From positions 9,300,001 through 9,364,000 of the forward strand of contig OU015566.1 of NCBI GenBank assembly GCA_907165135.1: DNA of 64,000 nucleotides. The letters run 5' to 3'. Position 1 is the first letter of the stretch. Each line of letters opens with the position of its first letter. The notes under the pieces were generated by a model. The model did no database searches and was not told the DNA's origin. It worked only from the letters and a program-made list of their open reading frames with translations. Shown here piece after piece: positions 24,801 to 49,783 of this stretch. The stretch comes from Oikopleura dioica (lineage: Eukaryota; Animalia; Chordata). A program made the position numbers and the translations under genes.

Positions 24801-27800
24801 GAACCAGAAACAGATGTCATCACTAACACTGAACAGAAGCGAACAAAGACAGTTGTTGGTTTCACGCCTCATAAACTTGGTCCGATCACAAACGCGACGC
24901 TCACTTTACAAGTCGCCCATGGAATAGCCTACACTTTAGAGTTCGTTGGAACCTGCGTGCCTCCAGGTGTCAAATTCAGCTTCTTTGAGCACAACTTTGG
25001 TCCTACATTCCTGTTCAAGCCTGGTATGCCAGATACCTCAAAAGAATTGGTTATAGAAAATCACGACTTGAAAGAAATCTCTGTTGAAATGAGATCTAAG
25101 AAGAAGAAGGACTGGTATAGCTGCGAATTTGCGCCTATACTACTAAGACATCGACAGAAGGCCACTTGCAAATTTGTCTTCAGGCCTACAACTTGCAGAT
25201 CATTCACTGACACCGTTGAATTCGTCATCAATGGCTTGTCCGTTTATGAAGTTACCATAAGCGGCAAAGGAGTGGATCTTCGGCTTGAGCTTAGAAAACC
25301 GATTCCACGAGGAGAAATACGTTTGGGAGCAATCCGCGCAGGACAGAGCGTGACAAAGCTCATTCCAATCGTGAACAGATCATCTGCTACCGCGGAGTTC
25401 CAAATCGTCCAGGCTTTTAGATGTGAAGGCCTCAACCAAAACGGTGTCATTGGAATCAGCCCCGGTGGTATGATGAAACTTGAGCCAAAAGAAAGCATCG
25501 ACGTTGCTGTAACATTTGCGCCAAGTTCACGACTTCCAGCGTTCAAGGAGCATCTTTTGCTTGAGTGCATGGATATTTCAAAGCACTTCTTGACCATAAC
25601 TGGCGCTTGCCATGCCGTGCAAGTCTCCTTAGATCAAGATGCGATTCCATTCGCACCAGCGAATCCGAGATCGTCTACTGAACGACGGCTTATCATGAGC
25701 AACACTGGCGACATCGGCGTTGGCTTCGAGTGGGACACAGATCAACTTACAAAGGACTTTTCCATTAACCCGCTCAAAGGATACCTTAGTGCAGGAAATT
25801 CAATGGCTATTACAGTTTCTTTCCATCCAAAACACGTCAGCCAGGATATCCGATGTGACGCGATTGAATGCAAAATCGAAGGAAGTGACAGTTTATTCTT
25901 GACTTTGACTGGTACTTGCGTCCCCGTCAACACAACCAAAGAACAACCAACTCCATTCCAGTGTCTTGTTCGTTCCCGGGTTACCAAATCCGTCTCAATC
26001 AGGAACCCAACTGCTCATACATGGACTCTTAATCCAATCATTGACGGTATTAACGCCAACTACTGGAGCGGTCCTGAAGCCGTTTCTATCGAGCCATATG
26101 GAACTCGTGCAGTTGATTTCGTCTATCATCCGCTTTCCATGTTACCACCAGGCAGAAAACACAATGCGTCTGTATTCTTCCCCTTACCGGATGGAAATGG
26201 CCTCCATTTTCCATTTGTCGGACATGCAGATGCGCCGAAGCCGATCGCCATTCCTACTCGAGACGTTCCGTGCAAAACGAAGCACATCGAACTTCTCAAG
26301 ATTGAAAATTGGCTTCGTCAGCGACAACGACTCCGTGTGTCTATCGAAATGGTGTCACCTGATAAGCTCGACGCCTCGATCAAACTTCATGGGCCCGAGT
26401 ATATCGATGTTCCTGCTCTTGACACCGTTAATTACGAGTTGACTTTTTCTTCTCACAAAGAAGGCAACCTCAGTGCAAAGTTGTACTTCAAGAACGAAGT
26501 GACGAACGAGTACATCTTGTACATGGTAAAATTCAAAACCACTCAGCAGACCACCTTCGAAACAATCACGATGAACTCCCTTGTTCGCAGCGCAGCCACG
26601 CATAATATCAAGATCTTTAATCCGATGCAGACGCCCGCCCAATTCCAGAGTGAATGCAAAGTGACCGATGTAACCGTACCCGGCATTTTCACCATTCCAC
26701 CACAAACAAACGGACAAGTCTCTGTCGAATACCTGCCCAGAGTTTGAAATGCTCGCAAATGCTCGCGAACGCAAAGAGCGAGAGCAAAAATTTATCATTG
26801 CTTTGAGAGCAGGGGAGCGGGAGCATGAAAATAAAGTTGCTCGAGAGCCAAAAGAGCGCGAGCCCAAATTTGAAACCGCTCGCGAGCGCGGAGAGCACGA
26901 GCGCATATGTCGGCAATGCTCGGGAGCTAGACGAGCGGGAGCGGCTGCTCTCGTGCTCGCCATGGAATTGACTCACGAGCGGCTCGCGAGCAAAATTAAA
27001 GGAACAATTTTTTGCGTTATTATTCATTTTCATGGATAAATTTCTCTCGTGGATCAGTTTTTCGCGTTTCCGATTTGTGCAAGTTTCATTAGGTCCGTAA
27101 TCTCGGCAGCGGAACGCGAAAAGCCGAGAGTAAACAGATAAAAGATGCCCACCGCGAAGTGCTAACTCCTGTGAGAGGGACTCATTTGGAATTAGTTACG
27201 GGGTCGCTGAATCATTTTAGGCTCTTGAAAGCTGCTCGCGAGTCAGATTTTTCAGCTCGCGAGCCAATCGAGCGAGAGCAAAATTTGACCAGTGCTCGGG
27301 AGCCAGGAGAGCGAGAGCGCGTAATAAAATGTGCTCGCGAGCGCAAAGAGCGCGAACGCTGAAATAAATGCGCTCGGGAGCACAAAGAGCATCATGCTCG
27401 TGCTCGCTCGCTCTCAAGTGAGCCGCTCGCGAGTCTCGAAAATTTCAAACTCTGTACCTGCCTTTGAAGGTGGGCGAGTCGACCGGCCGCTTGACTTTTA
27501 CGAATCCGGATTTGGGAATCTTCCAGTATGACTTGAACTTGTGTGGTATCGCTGGAAAGCCAGAATCGCCGACTTACTTCGAAACTCCGCTTGGACAGAC
27601 TCACTCTGTCAGCATCAAGTTCATGAATCTGGCGAAGAAAAAGACCGAGTTCAACGCAAAGCTGACTTCGACAAAGGACTTCCAAGTAGAGCGAACTATC
27701 GCCGCGAATGCATCATCCGAAGTAATCGTCGAAGTCACCTTCGATCCAAGTGCGATTGGTTCGTCTAAGGCAACGCTTATTCTAACCTCTTTCTCTGGAG

Positions 27801-38747: not shown

Positions 38748-41723
38748 TCAGAAAAATTTATCGAAAAGATGGCCTGTTCTGTCGATGTTCTCCAACATTA
38801 TATTCCGCGCGTCTGTCAGGAAAATATCTGTATTAACTCCTTAACAGCATTTTTATAGGTTTGATAAGAAATAATAGACCTTGAAATTTGCTTTCGAGTA
38901 ATTCAGCAGTCGGCGGGTGGCAGTGAAGATATCCCCAAATTGAGTTCAACAACAGAAAAACGTGATACGGAGCGCAGAACTCGTAGATAAGTGATGTTTG
39001 CGCGATGATTTCCGGAATGATTCCGGACTTGGAAAGAAGGGTGACAAGACTGATTGACTCTCGCAACTCTTTCTGGCAAGAGACAGCGTCGGTGAAGCGA
39101 CAGGCTTCCCAAAAAGCAAGAAGTTGGTTCATTTTTGCGCGAAATATGAAAGTCATCCTTATTTCGTGCTGAAAATTTTTTCCGAAAAGAATAAAAAAAC
39201 AAGTTTTACGGCACTCTCCTATTAAAAATTCTCCAATCGTCGGCCAAAACAGAGATAAGCGGGAAAGTTAACTTTGGAATACTTTTCAGCAAGACCAGAT
39301 CTTTCTCCAAATTAGTTCTTTGCACGCCTCTGCCAACAGGAACAGGCCAAAAAGACTCAATATCTGGATGCTCTTCGCAAAAAACTTCCGTAAACAACGA
39401 TACAGCGGTGTTAGTCAGCAAAAGTTTCGCTTCTTCTTTTTCAACAGTGTTCAGAACTTCTTTTATGAATTGGAGAACAACGGAGTTCAACTGAGAGTCT
39501 TCTTCGATTTCCTCTGGAGGGATGACCCGGCGCTTTTTTGCACCTTTGCCGATTATTCCGACACCCATTATATTCGGCGCTTTTTGAGATATTTTTTGAG
39601 CTTGTTCCAAAAGCTTAAATTGCCTAAAAATCAAGCTATTTTTGATGAAACTTACCGAAACTTTCTTTTTCTCAGGAACTTCGAATTCAACTTGTTTTCT
39701 TTTGTGGCTCTTTCTCACTGAGTCGAACATGAATCTCAATATTGTCGAAAAACTTGCTGCATCTTCAGAAGCCGCTTTGATCCAAAAGCTCCACATTTTT
39801 GGAAAAACTTCATCATATTCTGCAGTCAAGAAAATAGGGAAATCTAACGTCATTGCTTCTAGTGCCAAATTCAGACTCGTTGGTGCTTCTTTTAGCTAAA
39901 AAATGATCTCAAGATATCGGCGAACAAAGAAATTGTTTTACCTTGAGTTTTCTGATAATTTCTACTGCAATAATCATCGATTCTGGATCGCGAAGTTTAA
40001 ACGCGTCGAGAATATTTGCGATTTTATGGGTCAAATGATCGATTGTTCGTTCTTGAATGATCTTTTTCACTACAAGTAACGAGCTGGATAAAGTCTTCTT
40101 TACATTGAACCTACCATTTGTTGCAGATGGATCTGATGGCTCATTTGTTTCGTTTAGTTCTGTCAAGATTAGCAAATTTTTAGCAAGGCCTTGTGGTCAC
40201 TAGAAGGAAACGAACATTAGCCATAAAATTTTTGATGAAAGAACTTACTGAGGAGCTTCAAAGGCGTCGGAGATGGCTTTGCTCAAGCAGTCTTTTTCTT
40301 GATTTAGGAAGGTCTCCTTGACCAGCTTTACCAGCGCAGTTTGAGCCTGAAGATCTTTGACGCTTTTGAGCAGCTTTGAAAGACAGAAAATTCTATTCGA
40401 TTCATCTGTCGAGATCATCGTCATCCTCAGAAGTCTGTAAGCTGGATCGACACTGGTCATCGTCGAGGGAATCGTGATTTTGTTTAGCATTTGATTCGTT
40501 TCATTCCTCGTCTCATTCTTTGTCGACAAACTTTGATCCTCCAACTTGTCAAGGATATTCGATAGAATATCGCGGAGGACGAAGCGTATTTCTGTTTCCG
40601 TTTCTTCGAATTCTCCGTCTCCATTGACGATCGAAACGAATATGTGCATCAAGTCAAATGAATGCGACTCAGAGGAGATGTTTGAGACATTAGCTTTGAA
40701 AAAGGTCGAGAAAATTTCGAAAAAATGATAATTCAGCAATTGGATTTTTGTGGATTTGTCGACCCTAACCTTTGATATCATCAATTTTCATGTCTGGGTG
40801 TTTCTCCACTTTCTGCTTGTGCATTTCCTGGAGAAGCCCTGGCGTGATATATTTGGCCGCTTGTTTGGTGATTCTACGAACGAGCTCTACTTTTTCCTTT
40901 TTGATGCTGCTCTTCAAAATGTGGATCAAATAGACGGTCCACATGAAAACATGTTCGTTGTGCGGCGTGAGCGGCTTCAAAAGACAATCAGTAACTATGT
41001 CCGGTTTTATCTCACTGAGGTACTCGAGAATCACTGTAAGAGCGTGAAGTTGCGCTTCGTTCTCGTCGCTAGCTCGGCGGAAGGTTTCGAAGGCGTTCTT
41101 GAGAAGCATGGATAGAATGAACTCGGGCTTGGAAATGGCGATCGAAGCGAGAATCCAGTCCAGAACGGGTTTTATGTCATGTGCTTGCTTGATTATGTAG
41201 TCGATCAGTGAGCTGTCTCCTCGATCGATGGAGTAGTGAATCCCGGTGACGATCATACACGAAAGCGAGCTAAACACAGCAACGTCGCTTTGCCCAAATC
41301 TTCTTGTAGTTTGAATATTGTTAATCGGAAACTTGTCGACCTTCACCAATTCAATTCCGATGCTCTTTACTGTCATAATCGCCCAGTAAGTCAGCTCCGG
41401 TACCCAAGCCTCGGCAGTTTCTTTCTCAAGCATGAGCTTTTGCAACTCGCCCAGGGCCATTTTGAGGTCTCGTTCGCCATTTGCGTCTGGTCGTAGATTC
41501 CGTATTTCTGGAAGAGTTAAATGCATGACTGTTGGGTTGCGGAAAATGTTTCGTTTTGCAGCAGCAGCAATGTTGTCCAAAATATCTTCACGAGCGACGG
41601 GACATGTTCGAAGTAGGGGAGGCAGTCCTGGATCATGTCTTCCTGATTACCTTTGCGGATTAAATTTGAAAGACTATCAACGATCGTCGACGATGGTCCG
41701 TTCATCGTCCGATTTCGTTCCAT
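38748..41723 (-). CDS. INTS5: Integrator complex subunit 5, with one 1-nt frameshift at 41599-41601
   Basis: AEAWVPELTYWAI, DWILASIAISKPEFILS, LLLNSIWGYL..H.P and C-terminal LENIDRTGHLFDKF resemble INTS5 N- and C-terminal blocks. Confidence 0.8.
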
Positions 41724-41865
41724 TCTAAATGAGTGAATGAGTTCATTTAAAAATATTACAAATTATAAGTTCAATAATCAATTTCTCGGGGCTGTCTCTA
41801 AAATGGTATAATTATAACTGTATGATTCAGTAAACGAAAACAGTACTGTAGGTATTAAATTTATC

Positions 41866-44800
41866 ATGAAACACGGTCAATCGGTTCTGAAGATGGAGAA
41901 AGTCCTCTTCGAGATTTCTGGAGCGGACCAATCAGAGCGCCCCGTACTCTGCGAAGAAGAAAACCATAAAATGCCCACCTGGAGACGAAAATTGTTTATC
42001 TTGACTGTTGAGCGGGTCAACTTGAGCCTCGACCTAATTCACACGTGATCGCTCATTCTGATAACATCCGCATGCGACTTGCCCTAAAATAACAGAAATT
42101 ACTTTTTTACTCAGACACACAGTAGCTGAAAGAGACAAATAACCCGCTGAATGGAGAAAATATTCTTTTGACTTTCTCAACTTCGACCATGGCAAAGTTG
42201 AGTAACCAGCAGAGATTACTACTAGAAAGGTTCCACCCAAAGTTTGACATCAAGGGCCATCTCTCCCGTGATCAATTCCAGGGGATCATCTCCAAATATC
42301 TTTTCTCCAGCCGAGGAACCCGCAAAACCCCGCGTAGAAATGTGCAAAGTCTCCGATCTGCATTTCGTGATTACGATTTTCGACCAGAGGAATCGTCAAA
42401 ATTGAAGAGCGAGGAAATTCAGCAGCCAAAGAAGCAGCATTCGTTTTCAGAGATATTTCAGGTCGAGAAATGGATCTCACCGGAAAAAGGGCGATTAGAA
42501 TGGAAGAGCACTAGAATGATCCAAAATTGGAATGCGAAAAGGATCGACAATTTCGAATGCCTCTTGAGAAGACACAAAAGCGCTGAAAAATTTATCAAAA
42601 GCAGGGAAGAGCGAATTAGTAAGCACAAGAATAATATATCGAAAATTGAAGAACGTTTCGCCTTGGAACCAGGTGAAATCATGGAAGTGGAGGAGAAACA
42701 AACGAAAAGAAAGCTCATAGTTAGGGCCCAGCCGCAAAAAATGGCCAACTCGAAATCGCTGTTTTTTTCAAAATCTGTCATGATAGGATGATAGAGCAGC
42801 TCAAGCTGAACAACTTTCATATTGAAGACTTTTTGAAAAACCTTTGTTGTGTGACCGGAAATGACCTGCAAAAGTCCGAAAATCGCACCAAAATCGGTTT
42901 TTTGGCCTGCGCAAGGTGTGCGCATCGGAAAAGTGTCTTTTTTCTTCTTAATGAATAGCTCAGGCTCTGAGCTATCTGTAGGTACCAAAAAAGTGGTCTT
43001 GGTACCCATTTTTTCTGAGTAAAGACTGTCGGAAAGTACCGGAAACCAGCGAAAAATGGCAAAAATGCCGGAAATTAAGGATAGGCTTCTAACTACTACA
43101 TCCTTTTCGTCCTCGACGTTTAAAAACACTTAAGGTCAACTTCGGCCACTTTGTGCCGGAGGACCTCCCGGAGGACCCCTCTGCTGGAAGACAAGCTGCT
43201 GGAAGACCAGTATTTAAAAATAAAGACACAAACAAAATATAAAGCCTGGATTGGATGGTGATTGCCGTATTCGGCCACTTGATGCTGGAGGACCTCCTGG
43301 AGGACCCCTCTGCTGGAAGACAAAGTGCTGGAAGACCATTATTAAAGAAGAAAGATACAAATAAAATATAAAGCCTGGAATGGCTCGTTATTGCCCTAAT
43401 CGGCCACTTGATGCCGGAGGACCTCCCGGAGGACCCCTCTGCTGGAAGACAAGGTGCTGGAAGACCAGTATAAAAATAAATGAAAAGCCTTGTCTGGCCA
43501 CATATTGCCACATTTGGCCAAACATCTCGAAAGACCTTAAACTTGAAGACAAACTGCTGTAAGACTAATTAAAAAACAAGTTGCTTTTCTTTGAACACGT
43601 CTGTTTATTAAATTTGTCAAGAAAAGAGAGGCCCGCTTTTCAATCAGAGTCAGGGCAAAGCCGACCCGAAGGAGAGGCAACGCCCGTTTATTCTTTTCAA
43701 TCAGAGTCAAGGCGAAGCTGACCCGGAGGGGAGGCCACGCCCGCTTATTCTTTTCAATCAGAGTCAGGGCGAAGACGACCCGGAGGGGAGGCCACGCCCG
43801 CTTATTCTTTTCAATCAGAGTCAGGGCGAAGCCGACCCGGAGGGGAGGCCACGCACGTTTATTCTTTTCAATCAGAGTCAGGGCGAAGCCGACCCGGAGG
43901 GGAGGCCACGCCCGCTTATTCTTTTCAATCAGAGTCAGGGCGAAGCCGACCCGAAGGGGAGGCCACGCCCGCTTATTCTTTTCAATCAGAGTAAGGCGAA
44001 GCCGATCCGAAAGGAGGCCACGCCCGCTTATTCTTTTCAATCAGAGTAAGGCGAAGCCGACCCGAAGGGGAGGCCACGCCCGTTTATTCTTTTCAATCAG
44101 AGTCAGGGCGAAGCCGACCCGAAGGGGAGGCCACGCCCGCTTATTCTTTTCAATCAGAGTAAGGCGAAGCCGATCCGAAGGGGAGGCCACGCCCGCTTAT
44201 TCTTTTCAATCAGAGTAAGGCGAAGCCGACCCGAAGGGGAGGCCACGCCCGTTTATTCTTTTCAATCAGAGTCAGGGCGAAGCCGACCCGGAGGGGAGGC
44301 CACGCCCGCTTATTCTTTTCAATCAGAGTCAGGGCGAAGCCGACCCGAAGGGGAGGCCACGCCCGCTTATTCTTTTCAATCAGAGTAAGGCGAAGCCGAT
44401 CCGAAGGGGAGGCCACGCCCGCTTATTCTTTTCAATCAGAGTAAGGCGAAGCCGACCCGAAGGGGAGGCCACGCGCGTTTATTCTTTTCAATCAGAGTCA
44501 GGGCGAAGCCGACCCGGAGGGGAGGCCACGCATGCTTATTCTTTTCAATCAGAGTCAGGGCGAAGCCGACCCGAAGGGGAGGCCACGCCCGCTTATTCTT
44601 TTCAATCAGAGTAAGGCGAAGCCGACCCGAAGGGGAGGCCACGCCCGTTTATTCTTTTCAATCAGAGTCAGGGCGGAGCCGACCCGGAGGGGAGGCCACG
44701 CCCGTTTATTCTTTTCAATCAGAGTCAGGGCGGAGCCGACCCGGAGGGGAGGCAACGCCCGCTTATTCTTTTCAATCAGAGTCAGGGCGAAGCCGACCCG

Positions 44801-47800
44801 GAGGGGAGGCCAACCCCGCGTATTCTTTTCAATCAGAGTCAGGGCGAAGCCGACCCGAAGGGGAGGCCACGCCCGTTTATTCTTTTCAATCAGAGTCAGG
44901 GCGGAGCCGACCCGAAGGGGAGGCCACGCCCGCTTATTCTTTTCAATCAGAGTCAGGGCGAAGCCGACCCCAAGGAGAGGCCGAGCCCGTTTATTCTTTT
45001 CAATCAGAGTCAGGGCGAAGCCGACCCGGAGGGGAGGCCACGTCCGTTTATTCTTTTCAATCAGAGTCAGGGCGAAGCCGACCCGAAGGGGAGGCCACGC
45101 CCGTTTATTCTTTTCAATCAGAGTCAGGGCGGAGCCGACCCGGAGGGGAGGCAACGCCCGCTTATTCTTTTCAATCAGAGTCAGGGCGAAGCCGACCCGG
45201 AGGGGAGGCCAACCCCGCTTATTCTTTTCAATCAGAGTCAGGGCGAAGCCGACCCAAAGGGGAGGCCACGCCCGTTTATTCTTTTCAATCAGAGTCAGGG
45301 CGGAGCCGACCCGAAGGGGAGGCCACGCCCGCTTATTCTTTTCAATCAGAGTCAGGGCGAAGCCGACCCGAAGGGGAGGCCACGCCCGTTTATTCTTTTC
45401 AATCAGAGTCAGGGCGAAGCCGACCCGGAGGGGAGGCCACGCCCGTTTATTCTTTTCAATCAGAGTCAGGGCGAAGCCGACCCGAAGGGAGGCCACGCAC
45501 GTTTATTCTTTTCAATCAGAGTCAGGGCGAAGCCGACCCGAAGGGAGGCCACGCCCGCTTATTCTTTTCAATCAGAGTCAGGGGAAGCCGACCCGAAGGG
45601 GAGGCCACGCCCGCTTATTCTTTTCAATCAGAGTCAGGGCGAAGCCGACCCGGAGGGGAGGCCACGCACGTTTATTCTTTTCAATCAGAGTCAGGGCGAA
45701 GCCGACCCGGAGGGGAGGCCACGCACGTTTATTCTTTTCAATCAGAGTCAGGGCGAAGCCGACCCGAAGGGAGGCCACGCCCGCTTATTCTTTTCAATCA
45801 GAGTCAGGGAAGCCGACCCGAAGGGAGGCCACGCCCCTTATTCTTTTCAATCAGAGTCAGGGCGAAGCCGACCCGGAGGAGGCCACGCACGTTATTCTTT
45901 TCAATCAGAGTCAGGGCGAAGCCGACCCGAAGGAGGCCACGCCCGCTTATTCCTTTCAATCAGAGTCAGGGCGAAGCCGACCCGAAGGGAGGCCACGCCC
46001 GCTTATTCTTTTCAATCAGAGTCAGGGCGAAGCCGACCCGGAGGGGAGGCCACGCACGTTTATTCTTTTCAATCAGAGTCAGGGCGAAGCCGACCCGAAG
46101 GGAGGCCACGCCCGCTTATTCTTTTCAATCAGAGTCAGGGCACAGCAGACCGAGATGTTTAATCTGACACACACCCGGGGGTGATTTTAGACTTGTTGGA
46201 AGCGATATTGGCGCTCGAGACGAAAATAAAAAAACCGCCTGGTTTCAGACGCTTCCGTGAAATATGGCCGTCCTAGACCGAGCGTTTAATCTGTACAAGA
46301 TCCTGAATATATCGAGTTTTTCCGAACCCATCAGTCTCACGAATCATCCGGGAGGCTTTTTCGTAAATTCCCAAAAGATCGGAATTCAACGATAAGAAAG
46401 CGAACAAGTCAAGGCCTGTTAAACCTTTTCGGCCTGTTTGTGATTGAAAAGAATAAGCAAGCGTGGCCTCAACTTTGTGTCGGCTTCGCCCTGACTCTGA
46501 TTGAAAAGAATAAACGCGCGTGGCCTCTCCTCCGGGTCGGCTTCACCCTGATTCTGATTGAAAGAATAAACGGGCGTGGCCTCCCTCCGGGTCGGCATCG
46601 CCCTGACTCTGATTGAAAAGAATAAGCGGGCGTGGCCTCCTCCGGGTCGGCTTCCCCTGACTCTGATTGAAAAGAATAAGCGGGCGTGGCCTCCTTCGGG
46701 TCGGCTTCGCCCTGACTCTGATTGAAAAGAATAAACGTGCGTGGCCTCCTCCGGGTCGGCTTCGCCCTGACTCTGATTGAAAAGAATAAGCGGGCGTGGC
46801 CTCCCTTCGGGTCGGCTTCGCCCTGACTCTGATTGAAAGGAATAAGCGGGCGTGGCCTCCCCTTCGGGTCGGCTTCGCCCTGACTCTGATTGAAAAGAAT
46901 AACGGGCGTTGCCTCCTCCGGGTCGGCTCCGCCCTGACTCTGATTGAAAAGAATAAACGGGCGTGGCCTCCTCCGGGTCGGCTCCGCCCTGACTCTGATT
47001 GAAAAGAATAAACGGGCGTGGCCTCCCTTCGGGTCGGCTTCTCCTTACTCTGATTAAAAGAATAAGCGGGCGTGGCCTCCCCTTCGGGTCGGCTTCGCCC
47101 TGACTCTGATTGAAAAGAATAAGCGGGCGTGGCCTCCCTCCGGGTCGGCTTCGCCCTGACTCTGATTGAAAAGAATAAACGGGCGTGGCCTCCTACGGGT
47201 CGGCTTCGCCTTACTCTGATTGAAAAGAATAAGCGGGCGTGGCCTCCCCTTCGGATCGGCTTCGCCTTACTCTGATTGAAAAGAATAAGCGGGCGTGGCC
47301 TCCCCTCCGGGTCGTCTTCGCCCTGACTCTGATTGAAAAGAATAAGCGGGCGTGGCCTCCCCTCCGGGTCAGCTTCGCCTTGACTCTGATTGAAAAGAAT
47401 AAACGGGCGTTGCCTCCCCTTCGGGTCGGCTTTGCCCTGACTCTGATTGAAAAGCGGGCCTCTCTTTTCTTGACAAATTTAATAAACAGACGTGTTCAAA
47501 GAAAAGCAACTTGTTTTTTAATTAGTCTTACAGCAGTTTGTCTTCAAGTTTAAGGTCTTTCGAGATGTCTGATCGAGTTTGGCCAAATGTGGCAATATGT
47601 GGCCAGACAAGGCTTTTCATTTATTTTTTTATACTGGTCTTCCAGCACCTTGTCTTCCAGCAGAGGGGTCCTCCGGGAGGTCCTCCGGCATCAATTGGCC
47701 GATTAGGGCAATAACGAGCCATTCCAGGCTTTATATTTTATTTGTATCTTTCTTCTTTAATAATGGTCTTCCAGCACCTTGTCTTCCAGCAGAGGGGTCC

Positions 47801-48568
47801 TCCAGGAGGTCCTCCGGCATCAAGTGGCCGAATACGGCAATCACCAGCCAATCCAGGCTTTATATTTTGTTTGTGTCTTTATTTTTAAATACTGGTCTTC
47901 CAGCAGCTTGTCTTCCAGCAGAGGGGTCCTCCGGGAGGTCCTCCGGCACAAAGTGGCCGAAGTTGACCTTAAGTGTTTTTAAACGTCGAGGACGAAAAGG
48001 ATGTAGTAGTTAGAAGCCTATCCTTAATTTCCGGCATTTTTGCCATTTTTCGCTGGTTTCCGGTACTTTCCGACAGTCTTTACTAAGAAAAAATGGGTAC
48101 CAAGACCATTTTTTTTTGGTACCTACAGATAGCTCAGAGCCTGAGCTATTCATAAAGAAGAAAAAAAAAGACACTTTTCCGATGCGCACACCTTGCGCAG
48201 GCCAAAAAACCGATTTTGGTGCGATTTTCGGACTTTTGCAGGTCATTTCCGGTCACACAACAAAGGTTTTTCAAAAAGTCTTCAATATAAAAGTTGTTCA
48301 GCTTGAGCTGCTCTATCATCCTATCATGACAGATTTTGAAAAAAACAGCGATTTCGAGTTGGCCATTTTTTGCGGCTGGGCCCTACTCATAGTGAAGGAG
48401 TGGGAGAATATTAAAATATGCGAAAATGCTGTTGCCAATTTTCAAAAGAAAATGACCAAGTTGGAAAGTCTGATGTACTGCGAGCTGACAAACAGAGCGG
48501 CAATCAACAAAAATGAACACTTTCAAATGATTAGAATTTATCAAAACTTCCAAAAAGTTTTTAACTGA
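41866..48568 (+). CDS. Uncharacterised protein, divergently transcribed from INTS5, whose main exon is interrupted by the foldback element
   Basis: Frame is open 42126-42721 (~200 codons) and, after removing element+TSD, continues in the same frame: KLIV-KEWENIKICEN...QKVFN* (stop 48566-68). First exon ~41866 is uncertain. Confidence 0.6.
43141..43500 (+). repeat. ~2.7 copies of a 129-bp tandem repeat in the left arm
   Basis: Recurrent ggaggacctcc(c/t)ggaggacccctctgctggaagacaa; the antisense ORF repeats a 43-codon unit. Confidence 0.85.
43631..46140 (+). repeat. 57-bp tandem satellite array, ~44 copies (left arm)
   Basis: Consensus cgcccgcttattcttttcaatcagagtcagggcgaagccgacccgaaggggaggcca (57 nt), matching the 19-aa periodicity of the spurious ORFs. 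Confidence 0.95.
46441..47460 (-). repeat. Same 57-bp satellite, inverted, ~18 copies (right arm)
   Basis: Reverse-complement units gattgaaaagaataagcgggcgtggcctccccttcgggtcggcttcgccctgactct. Confidence 0.95.
47600..47965 (-). repeat. Inverted copy of the 129-bp tandem repeat (right arm)
   Basis: Mirror image of 43141-43500. Confidence 0.85.
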
Positions 48569-48724
48569 CAAAACTCAAATAAAAACGATAAATTATAATT
48601 TATAAAAAAATCATTCGCTTAACGAATTCGGTTAAAGTGATCAGAAAAATTTCATTTGCAAACTTATAAAATAGCTAAAAAAAGATATATTTACAAAAAG
48701 GTATTTACACCAATGTATTTTCTT

Positions 48725-49783
48725 TCAAAGAAGGGTGCAGAGAACAACAAGAGCATATAAATATGTTTTTACTTTTATTATCGAAGAGTCACTCGTGCTG
48801 TTGAACGCTTGAGATCGTTTTGTTCTGATAGATTCCTCCAACTGATCTAAAAATTACCATAATTTTCATAATGAAACCTCGAAAAATTCCTACCCTGCCA
48901 TTCCTCGTAGAGAAATCCCTCGTAGGGCGTGTAGTTCTTCGCAAGATCAGTATTACACTTATCATCAGCGCAGCAATAAACTCTTGAGAATGAGCAGCCA
49001 GTCTTGCAAGCAAACTTTTTTAGATCTTCGTTTTTGTCGATCAAATCTTTTCCCGTACAGATTGGGTTGCATCCTGGAATCAATGAATATTAACAGCTAC
49101 TTCTTTCGAAAGCATCAAACCTGAAATAAGCGGGACGTGCGCGATGCCGGTTATTTTCAATGTGAAGCTGCCGTTTTTTCGTTTTTCATCCTCTCCGTAT
49201 TGACCGCTTAGGAACACTTTTTGAATGAATCGCTAGAATAACCTTTACCTGCAAGAGCTCGGTCGAAATTTCGTCGTCGAATCTCGAACTGGATTTGTTT
49301 GGTTGAATTCTACACAGCCTTTCATCGTGTAAAGCTTCTTTGCGCATTTCCTCTCGTGGCAAGGATAGCCTTCTTCGTTGAGATCTTCATCTCTAGGTTG
49401 CCAGTGGGCGATGTCGATGCAGTGGCCGGCGCGGACTTTACAGTAATATTTATCTTCCGTTTTGTTGTAGAACGAGGTGTACGCTTTGAAGGAACGTTTA
49501 ATTGGGTCCGGGTAGAGTTCTTCGAGTTCTTCTTTTCTGAAAAAGAGGTTGAAAAAGTGAGTAATCCGCCGTTACCTTTGATCAGAGATAAAGAGGGTCT
49601 ATTATTTTACCTTGGATAGGGACATCCAGCTGTTTTGTTGATATCAACTCTTCCTGTAAATTGATTTACTGCCGAGTTAAGTGAACACTCGCAAGTCACA
49701 ACATAATCCGGAGGTTCAACTCTGCTTCCAATTTCAGTTTGCGCCAAAGTTCCAACAGCGAAAAGAAAAAGTTTCAAGCTCAT
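48725..49783 (-). CDS. Secreted, probably GPI-anchored Cys-rich protein with a Ly6/uPAR (three-finger)-like CCxxxxCN end
   Basis: Signal peptide MSLKLFLFAVGTLA, many Cys, ...CKTGCSFSRVYCCADDKCN, and a terminal exon ending NSTSDSSIIKVKTYLYALVVLCTLL* (hydrophobic tail) after a 47-nt intron. Confidence 0.6.

Follow-up and report, generated by a model that had tools for sequence, protein, structure and literature searches.

Transposons with a foldback build have arisen several times, and most of them are related to Mutator (PMC4079207), among them FB and Tetris of Drosophila, while Galileo is a member of the P superfamily (PMC3573991) and the MITEs (miniature inverted-repeat transposable elements) called Mar belong to hAT, for which target consensus sequences of nTnnnnAn (Ac) and nnnTAnnn (Buster) have been published (PMC3517528). 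In the chordate Oikopleura dioica, transposon insertion is regarded as a route of intron gain on indirect evidence (PMC3443670), and 11% of the introns in assembly OKI2018_I69 are non-canonical, many of them G*-AG (PMC8008620). This assembly represents one Okinawan male and comprises 64.3 Mb in 19 scaffolds with 3.6% heterozygosity, its haplotypes being merged into a reference and allelic sub-assemblies (PMC8008620). Here, we describe a foldback element in a 64,000-nucleotide stretch of the O. dioica genome (GCA_907165135.1, contig OU015566.1, positions 9,300,001 to 9,364,000 of the forward strand, referred to as the window), where it lies within a protein-coding exon. The insertion is certainly real and derived, and it is probably a young, gene-breaking allele in the only coding exon of its host gene that is likely to be segregating. 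A first reading of the same DNA, below called the original prediction, had left the choice between a gene-killing insertion and a giant hairpin intron; the analysis favours the former, and the latter, finding no support beyond chance, appears unlikely.

The element proper, as delimited by reading the junctions and scanning for termini, covers positions 42722-48385 (5,664 bp) and is non-coding. Its termini (TAGGGCCC...) both show TAGGG as the outermost bases, and over 20 bases each end is the perfect reverse complement of the other (20/20). An exact 8-bp target-site duplication, CTCATAGT, stands at 42714-42721 and again at 48386-48393, so that the duplication and TAGGG ends initially described were correct. 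The extent first proposed, 42714-48397, captured the structure and ended too far downstream, as it took in the right duplication and four host bases. The features of the element and the two pieces of the host coding sequence (CDS), with strand given where a feature has one, are as follows:

42189..42721, forward strand: 5' piece of the host CDS, from ATG at 42189 through 177 codons and the first two bases of a Val codon (open reading frame, ORF; 94% identity to metagenome proteins P0001/P0003)
42714..42721: left copy of the duplication CTCATAGT; relatives have a single copy, CTCATAAT, at the same site
42722..43636: left unique arm, beginning TAGGGCCCAGCCGC (915 nt, 8 mismatches against the right arm)
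43141-43476: 129-bp sub-repeat within the left arm (repeat analysis)
43636..46141: 57-bp satellite array of ~44 copies, 59% G+C, 2.5 kb (repeat analysis)
46142..46440: unique central loop of 300 bp without an open frame (4 stops in translation; no Rfam match)
46441..47454: inverted 57-bp satellite array of ~18 copies (repeat analysis)
47454..48385: right unique arm, ending GCGGCTGGGCCCTA (932 nt)
47620-47961: 129-bp sub-repeat within the right arm (repeat analysis)
48386..48393: right copy of the duplication CTCATAGT (junction reading)
48394..48568, forward strand: 3' piece of the host CDS, with the last Val base, 57 codons and TGA at 48566-48568, including the conserved C-terminal family motif (ORF and alignment with a paralogue)

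Arm sequence accounts for ~95% of the element. The unique parts of the arms differ by only 8 mismatches and a few indels, match without interruption over at most 237 nt, and each contain ~2.6 copies of the 129-bp sub-repeat; the near-identical arms covering ~95% of the element that had been proposed are thus borne out. As the arms are unequal in length (about 2 versus 3.4 kb), the stem comes to ~1.95 kb, matching the hairpin of ~2 kb estimated before. Cofolding of the two arms over their outermost 250 nt gave a free energy of -460 kcal/mol, and the long double-stranded RNA and cruciforms predicted for the element are physically reasonable and, as biology, hypothetical. The element encodes nothing and is non-autonomous: its ORFs are translated repeats, which gave no Pfam family above cut-off, no transposase and only sub-threshold chance matches, and a scan of 41500-49500 against Rfam gave no match.

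The host gene consists of a single exon of ~235 codons, and its flanks rejoin in frame as K-L-I-V-K-E-W-E-N (KLIV/KEWEN), in agreement with the original prediction. The two pieces of its CDS were searched and aligned separately and were never joined for searches. A word search of the protein collection with the 5' piece returned one cluster of marine-metagenome proteins from ENA, P0001, P0002, and P0003, the last of which comes from a Tara Oceans assembly. These proteins are 94% identical to the host protein and cross the insertion site uninterrupted as KLIMKEWEN. At the nucleotide level, both flanks align with each of L030, L031, and L032, three independent marine-metagenome contigs in which one 8-mer, CTCATAAT, stands in place of the element and the gene continues across the site, which is the empty site that had been called for as a check. 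In addition, a paralogue on scaffold C1 is uninterrupted across the homologous point, and three other full-length copies of the element each have their own, different 8-bp duplication. The empty site in three contigs and the uninterrupted paralogue identify the structure as a derived insertion and not an assembly chimera, and the proposal of a foldback transposon of 5.7 kb in a coding exon is upheld. An assembly artefact might be considered for a nanopore-based assembly, either as a foldback chimera or through a wrongly joined repeat, and the satellite copy counts (44 and 18) may be assembly errors. However, such an artefact would have to account for the exact 8-bp duplication, already cited against a chimera in the original prediction, of a target that is single-copy in relatives, for three further loci that are built alike but bear other duplications, and for a short-read Tara scaffold in which a family arm borders another flank, and is therefore hardly credible. 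The chimera reading was rejected because of the duplication, the site found empty in relatives, and the copies that stand independently elsewhere.

The host copy was under constraint until recently. The copy in L032 is a full ORF of 243 residues, and compared with it, the 5' piece shows a dS of 0.20, a dN of 0.021 and a dN/dS of 0.107, while the 3' piece carries five changes only and no damage; a dN/dS of ~0.1 relative to wild relatives shows constraint on the host copy until shortly before the present. In L030 (940-962) and L031, one extra A in an A-run causes a frameshift that ends the protein at 225 residues; this is a frameshift allele occurring in nature or else a fault of assembly. Host paralogues are found on C1, C5, and C3 at an identity of only 27-35%, and alignment with them places the best-conserved motif of the family within the 57 residues downstream of the break. 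Two of the paralogues lie in tandem, head to tail, in L021:830-2079 (C1:14907028-14908277), and more distant members of the family occur on C5 and, several of them, on C3, a scaffold whose size fits a Y-specific one. The family looks like an expanding, lineage-specific gene family. No Pfam domain was found above cut-off in the host protein, where only sub-threshold chance matches were seen. The host is accordingly a selected, Oikopleura-specific, coiled-coil-like and single-exon gene under purifying selection.

In the course of events that best fits these observations, a non-autonomous cut-and-paste foldback transposon, whose mobilisation in trans was most likely the work of a transposase of hAT type, inserted recently into a TATA-like target with a central AT and made the 8-bp duplication there. 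On this chromosome, the gene would then be broken. The predicted read-through product comprises 178 host residues and 22 element-encoded residues before a stop at 42789-42791 (~200 residues) and would lose 57 conserved C-terminal residues, and a transcript crossing the element would be expected to fold into a stem of ~2 kb. We propose that the broken allele is tolerated because it is young; the host gene also has paralogues. The latter invites another explanation, namely that the element landed neutrally in an already dispensable copy of a multi-copy, lineage-specific family, in which case the allele may even be fixed. The paralogues on C1, C5, and C3 and a host protein without a known domain are consistent with this, yet the dN/dS of 0.1 indicates recent constraint on the very same copy, and the paralogues share only 27-35% identity; a neutral insertion of this kind is improbable.

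A young gene-breaking allele would probably be heterozygous or segregating in the sequenced male. The window lies on C4, a scaffold sized like an autosome (a status that follows from scaffold sizes), which makes a heterozygous state probable, and in a haplotype-merged assembly, an insertion present on one haplotype could appear in the reference. It could be conjectured that HaploMerger2 favoured the longer, insertion-bearing allele; the paper describing it says no more than that the reference receives the 'better-quality allele'.

Some observations weigh against a broken gene. Both halves of the gene are open and undamaged, which would equally fit a functional gene from which the element is spliced, and Oikopleura has many non-canonical G*-AG introns (PMC8008620) as well as introns proposed to be born from transposons (PMC3443670). 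The element might accordingly be a newborn giant hairpin intron, whose extremely stable stem juxtaposes the junctions and which a permissive spliceosome removes in frame, leaving the gene at work. To assess the splice-site potential, all G*-AG pairs within 15 nt of the junctions were enumerated, giving eight in-frame, stop-free routes at the locus. The original prediction had named two of them, and all four of its coordinates are correct: GT at 42720 to AG at 48397 (joining 42719 to 48398) results in the loss of V and K, while GG at 42724 to AG at 48392 (joining 42723 to 48393) adds one codon. A third route that it had not included, GC at 42726 to AG at 48397 (joining 42725 to 48398), leaves the length unchanged and alters K to R only.

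Removability in frame is, however, no evidence for an intron. The same element with an 8-bp duplication was placed at 588 other positions of the host CDS as a null model. At least one in-frame G*-AG route was present at 90% of the simulated sites and at least eight at 32%, with a mean of 5.9 against the eight at the real site. Counting GT-AG only, the real site has three in-frame routes (one donor, three acceptors), compared with at least one at 39% and at least three at 7% of the simulated sites. The splice-site potential of the insertion is thus no greater than chance. Moreover, the duplication itself provides a single GT-AG pair (42720, 48392), which removes one base too many, causing a frameshift and an immediate TGA. 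Sequence contexts of the donors and acceptors are otherwise weak as well: 48397 is not preceded by a pyrimidine tract, and the GT route has a T at position +3 of its donor. Since the duplication gives AGT, and not AG/G, before the T of the element, every in-frame route alters the protein. An intron of this length would be ~115 times the median (49 bp). No spliced or read-through product of the allele was found in the protein collection, which is weak evidence, as records of this genome may be missing there. Taken together, a functional hairpin intron is unlikely, and the broken allele remains the favoured interpretation.

At the copy on C1, the duplication AGTATAGG places AG/GTAGGG on the left and ...TATAG/G on the right, and a scarless GT-AG removal is predicted there. 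Based on such junction sequences, the target motif and the ends would yield a scarless splice design whenever the duplication ends in AGG. The bolder idea that the window shows a chordate's giant hairpin intron at the moment of its birth, and that the ATAG plus T-AGGG design is a built-in intron generator when the duplication ends in G, which it does at the C1 copy, is in our view rather doubtful.

The terminal 265 bp of the element recur in two other full copies found by searching the genome, one on C1 (16582004-16587920, equivalent to L015:1005-6921), bearing the duplication just described, and one on C2 (1589728-1594009) with the duplication ACTATGGG. These copies are 96-97% identical to the element at the ends and ~82% further in, and the two arms are closely matched inside each copy. 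Relatives of greater divergence occur on C3 and C4, and one diverged copy is full-length with its own 8-bp duplication; solitary ends are also present. Beyond this genome, the Tara scaffold L069 (P0004), a short-read assembly, has an arm of the same family beside a different flank, CCCATAGT. Open frames were measured across the virtual empty sites of four copies: among the three close copies, only that in the window is clearly intracoding, as the C2 copy is not in an open frame and the C1 copy lies towards the close of a long one that looks non-coding there. In the metagenomes of JGI, a scan with a 19-nt terminus gave three matches, all of them chance matches of 19-20 nt in GC-rich contigs. 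No description of a foldback element like this family was found in the Oikopleura literature searched.

The 57-bp satellite is a transposon-spread satellite. It forms paired inverted arrays at ~20 further loci, where several foldback sub-families that differ in their outer arms carry it, and examples from the genome search are:

C5:1795583-1799914: paired satellite arrays
C4:836166-839460: paired satellite arrays
C5:6064943-6067352: paired satellite arrays
C2:2284899-2288049: paired satellite arrays

The combination of hAT-like ends and Foldback-like satellite arms noted in the original prediction as unusual is therefore present but not unique to the locus, the same satellite lying in ~20 other foldback loci. 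Two of the ~20 satellite foldbacks were partly read. The first, near 8.65 Mb on C1, ends in TAGG and is flanked by the 8-bp duplication GTGATCTT; the second lies near 2.30 Mb on C5, and its ends could not be made out. The genome also contains short MITEs that end in TAGGGCC... and have 8-bp duplications. Those of 205-674 bp with TAGGGCCGACGCGCAAAAAA ends, at C2:4454291-4454895, C4:6266451-6266655, and C4:11998860-11999533, are near-related to the foldback at their ends. A different hAT-type MITE of ~720 bp is located in the window at 26727-27463, with CAGAGTTTGAAA... ends and the 8-bp duplication TACCTGCC.

In terms of classification, this is a foldback-type non-autonomous element that probably belongs to hAT, as suggested by its ends and duplications. 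Its tandem-repeat arms make up most of the element and enclose a short non-coding middle, which places it in the foldback structural class. The hAT-like traits are strict 8-bp duplications in all paired copies, including those of related TAGG-ended families, and YAGGG ends, which match YARNG. Furthermore, a remnant bearing a hAT domain in the same genome (L040) has CAGGG ends and an 8-bp duplication. The targets of TAGG(G)-ended elements, in contrast, do not match either published hAT consensus: AT stands at positions 4-5 of the 8-mer in 14/14, often within TATA or ATAG, and T2 and A7 are not kept. These targets are duplications or flanks from the window, L008, L009, L015-L019, L046-L048, L059-L061, and L069. 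A search for an autonomous partner with the same termini, as the original prediction had advised, found none among the loci examined. hAT dimerisation domains are present at 10 loci in the genome, where MULE transposase loci are found too, and none of the hAT or MULE loci examined shares ends or sequence with the element. The off-consensus target motif and the failure to find a partner transposase weaken the assignment to hAT and argue against a confident call. A multi-copy family bearing hAT domains with CAGGGTGTCAAATCGCGG ends (L043:3993, L044:3494-9431, L045:4561, L034:288, and L036:295) was also observed; its members are 86-98% alike on C1, C4, and C5, the ends are spaced ~6 kb apart in L044 and are unlike those of the foldback. 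From its domains and end spacing, it is possibly an autonomous hAT.

On its own, the locus adds a further young transposon allele to those of a highly compact genome and is a well-documented example rather than a new phenomenon. With approximately one gene per 3.7 kb, a considerable share of fresh insertions must strike exons by chance. If RNA data showed such insertions to be spliced out, an animal would be seen to gain introns from DNA transposons, which would help account for the massive intron turnover and the non-canonical splice sites of Oikopleura. If they are not spliced, exon insertions provide a measure of the recessive insertion load in a single wild-type individual and call for caution with haplotype-merged reference assemblies. 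With this family, a foldback is added that spreads a satellite, has hAT-like ends and inserts at targets whose central AT is invariant.

Compared with described systems, the element resembles transposon-derived introns and introners (PMC3443670; Huff et al. 2016, to the extent reported in PMC13326754) in being exonic with potential splice sites at its ends and duplication. It differs in that scarless removal requires the duplication to supply AG/G, and the copy in the window is one base off. With hAT MITEs such as Mar of Drosophila willistoni (PMC3517528), it shares 8-bp duplications, YAGGG-type ends (CAGRGGTAGGC in Mar), the absence of coding sequence and a presumed mobilisation in trans. However, hAT elements are described with terminal inverted repeats (TIRs) of 5-27 bp and lengths below 4 kb (PMC3517528), unlike the satellite-filled arms of ~2 to 3.4 kb seen here. 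Among the Mutator/Phantom foldbacks, Drosophila FB and Tetris of D. virilis likewise have long tandem-repeat inverted arms and a short non-coding middle, and the likeness extends to few structurally complete copies, no transposase and a satellite common to other loci (PMC4079207). Tetris was assigned to Mutator because its duplications are 8-10 bp (PMC4079207), those of Mutator/Phantom foldbacks being 9-10 bp, whereas every copy read here has exactly 8 bp. Finally, Galileo has long TIRs with internal tandem repeats that differ in copy number between the arms, as in the present element, but its duplications are 7 bp and its complete copies encode a P-type transposase (PMC3573991).

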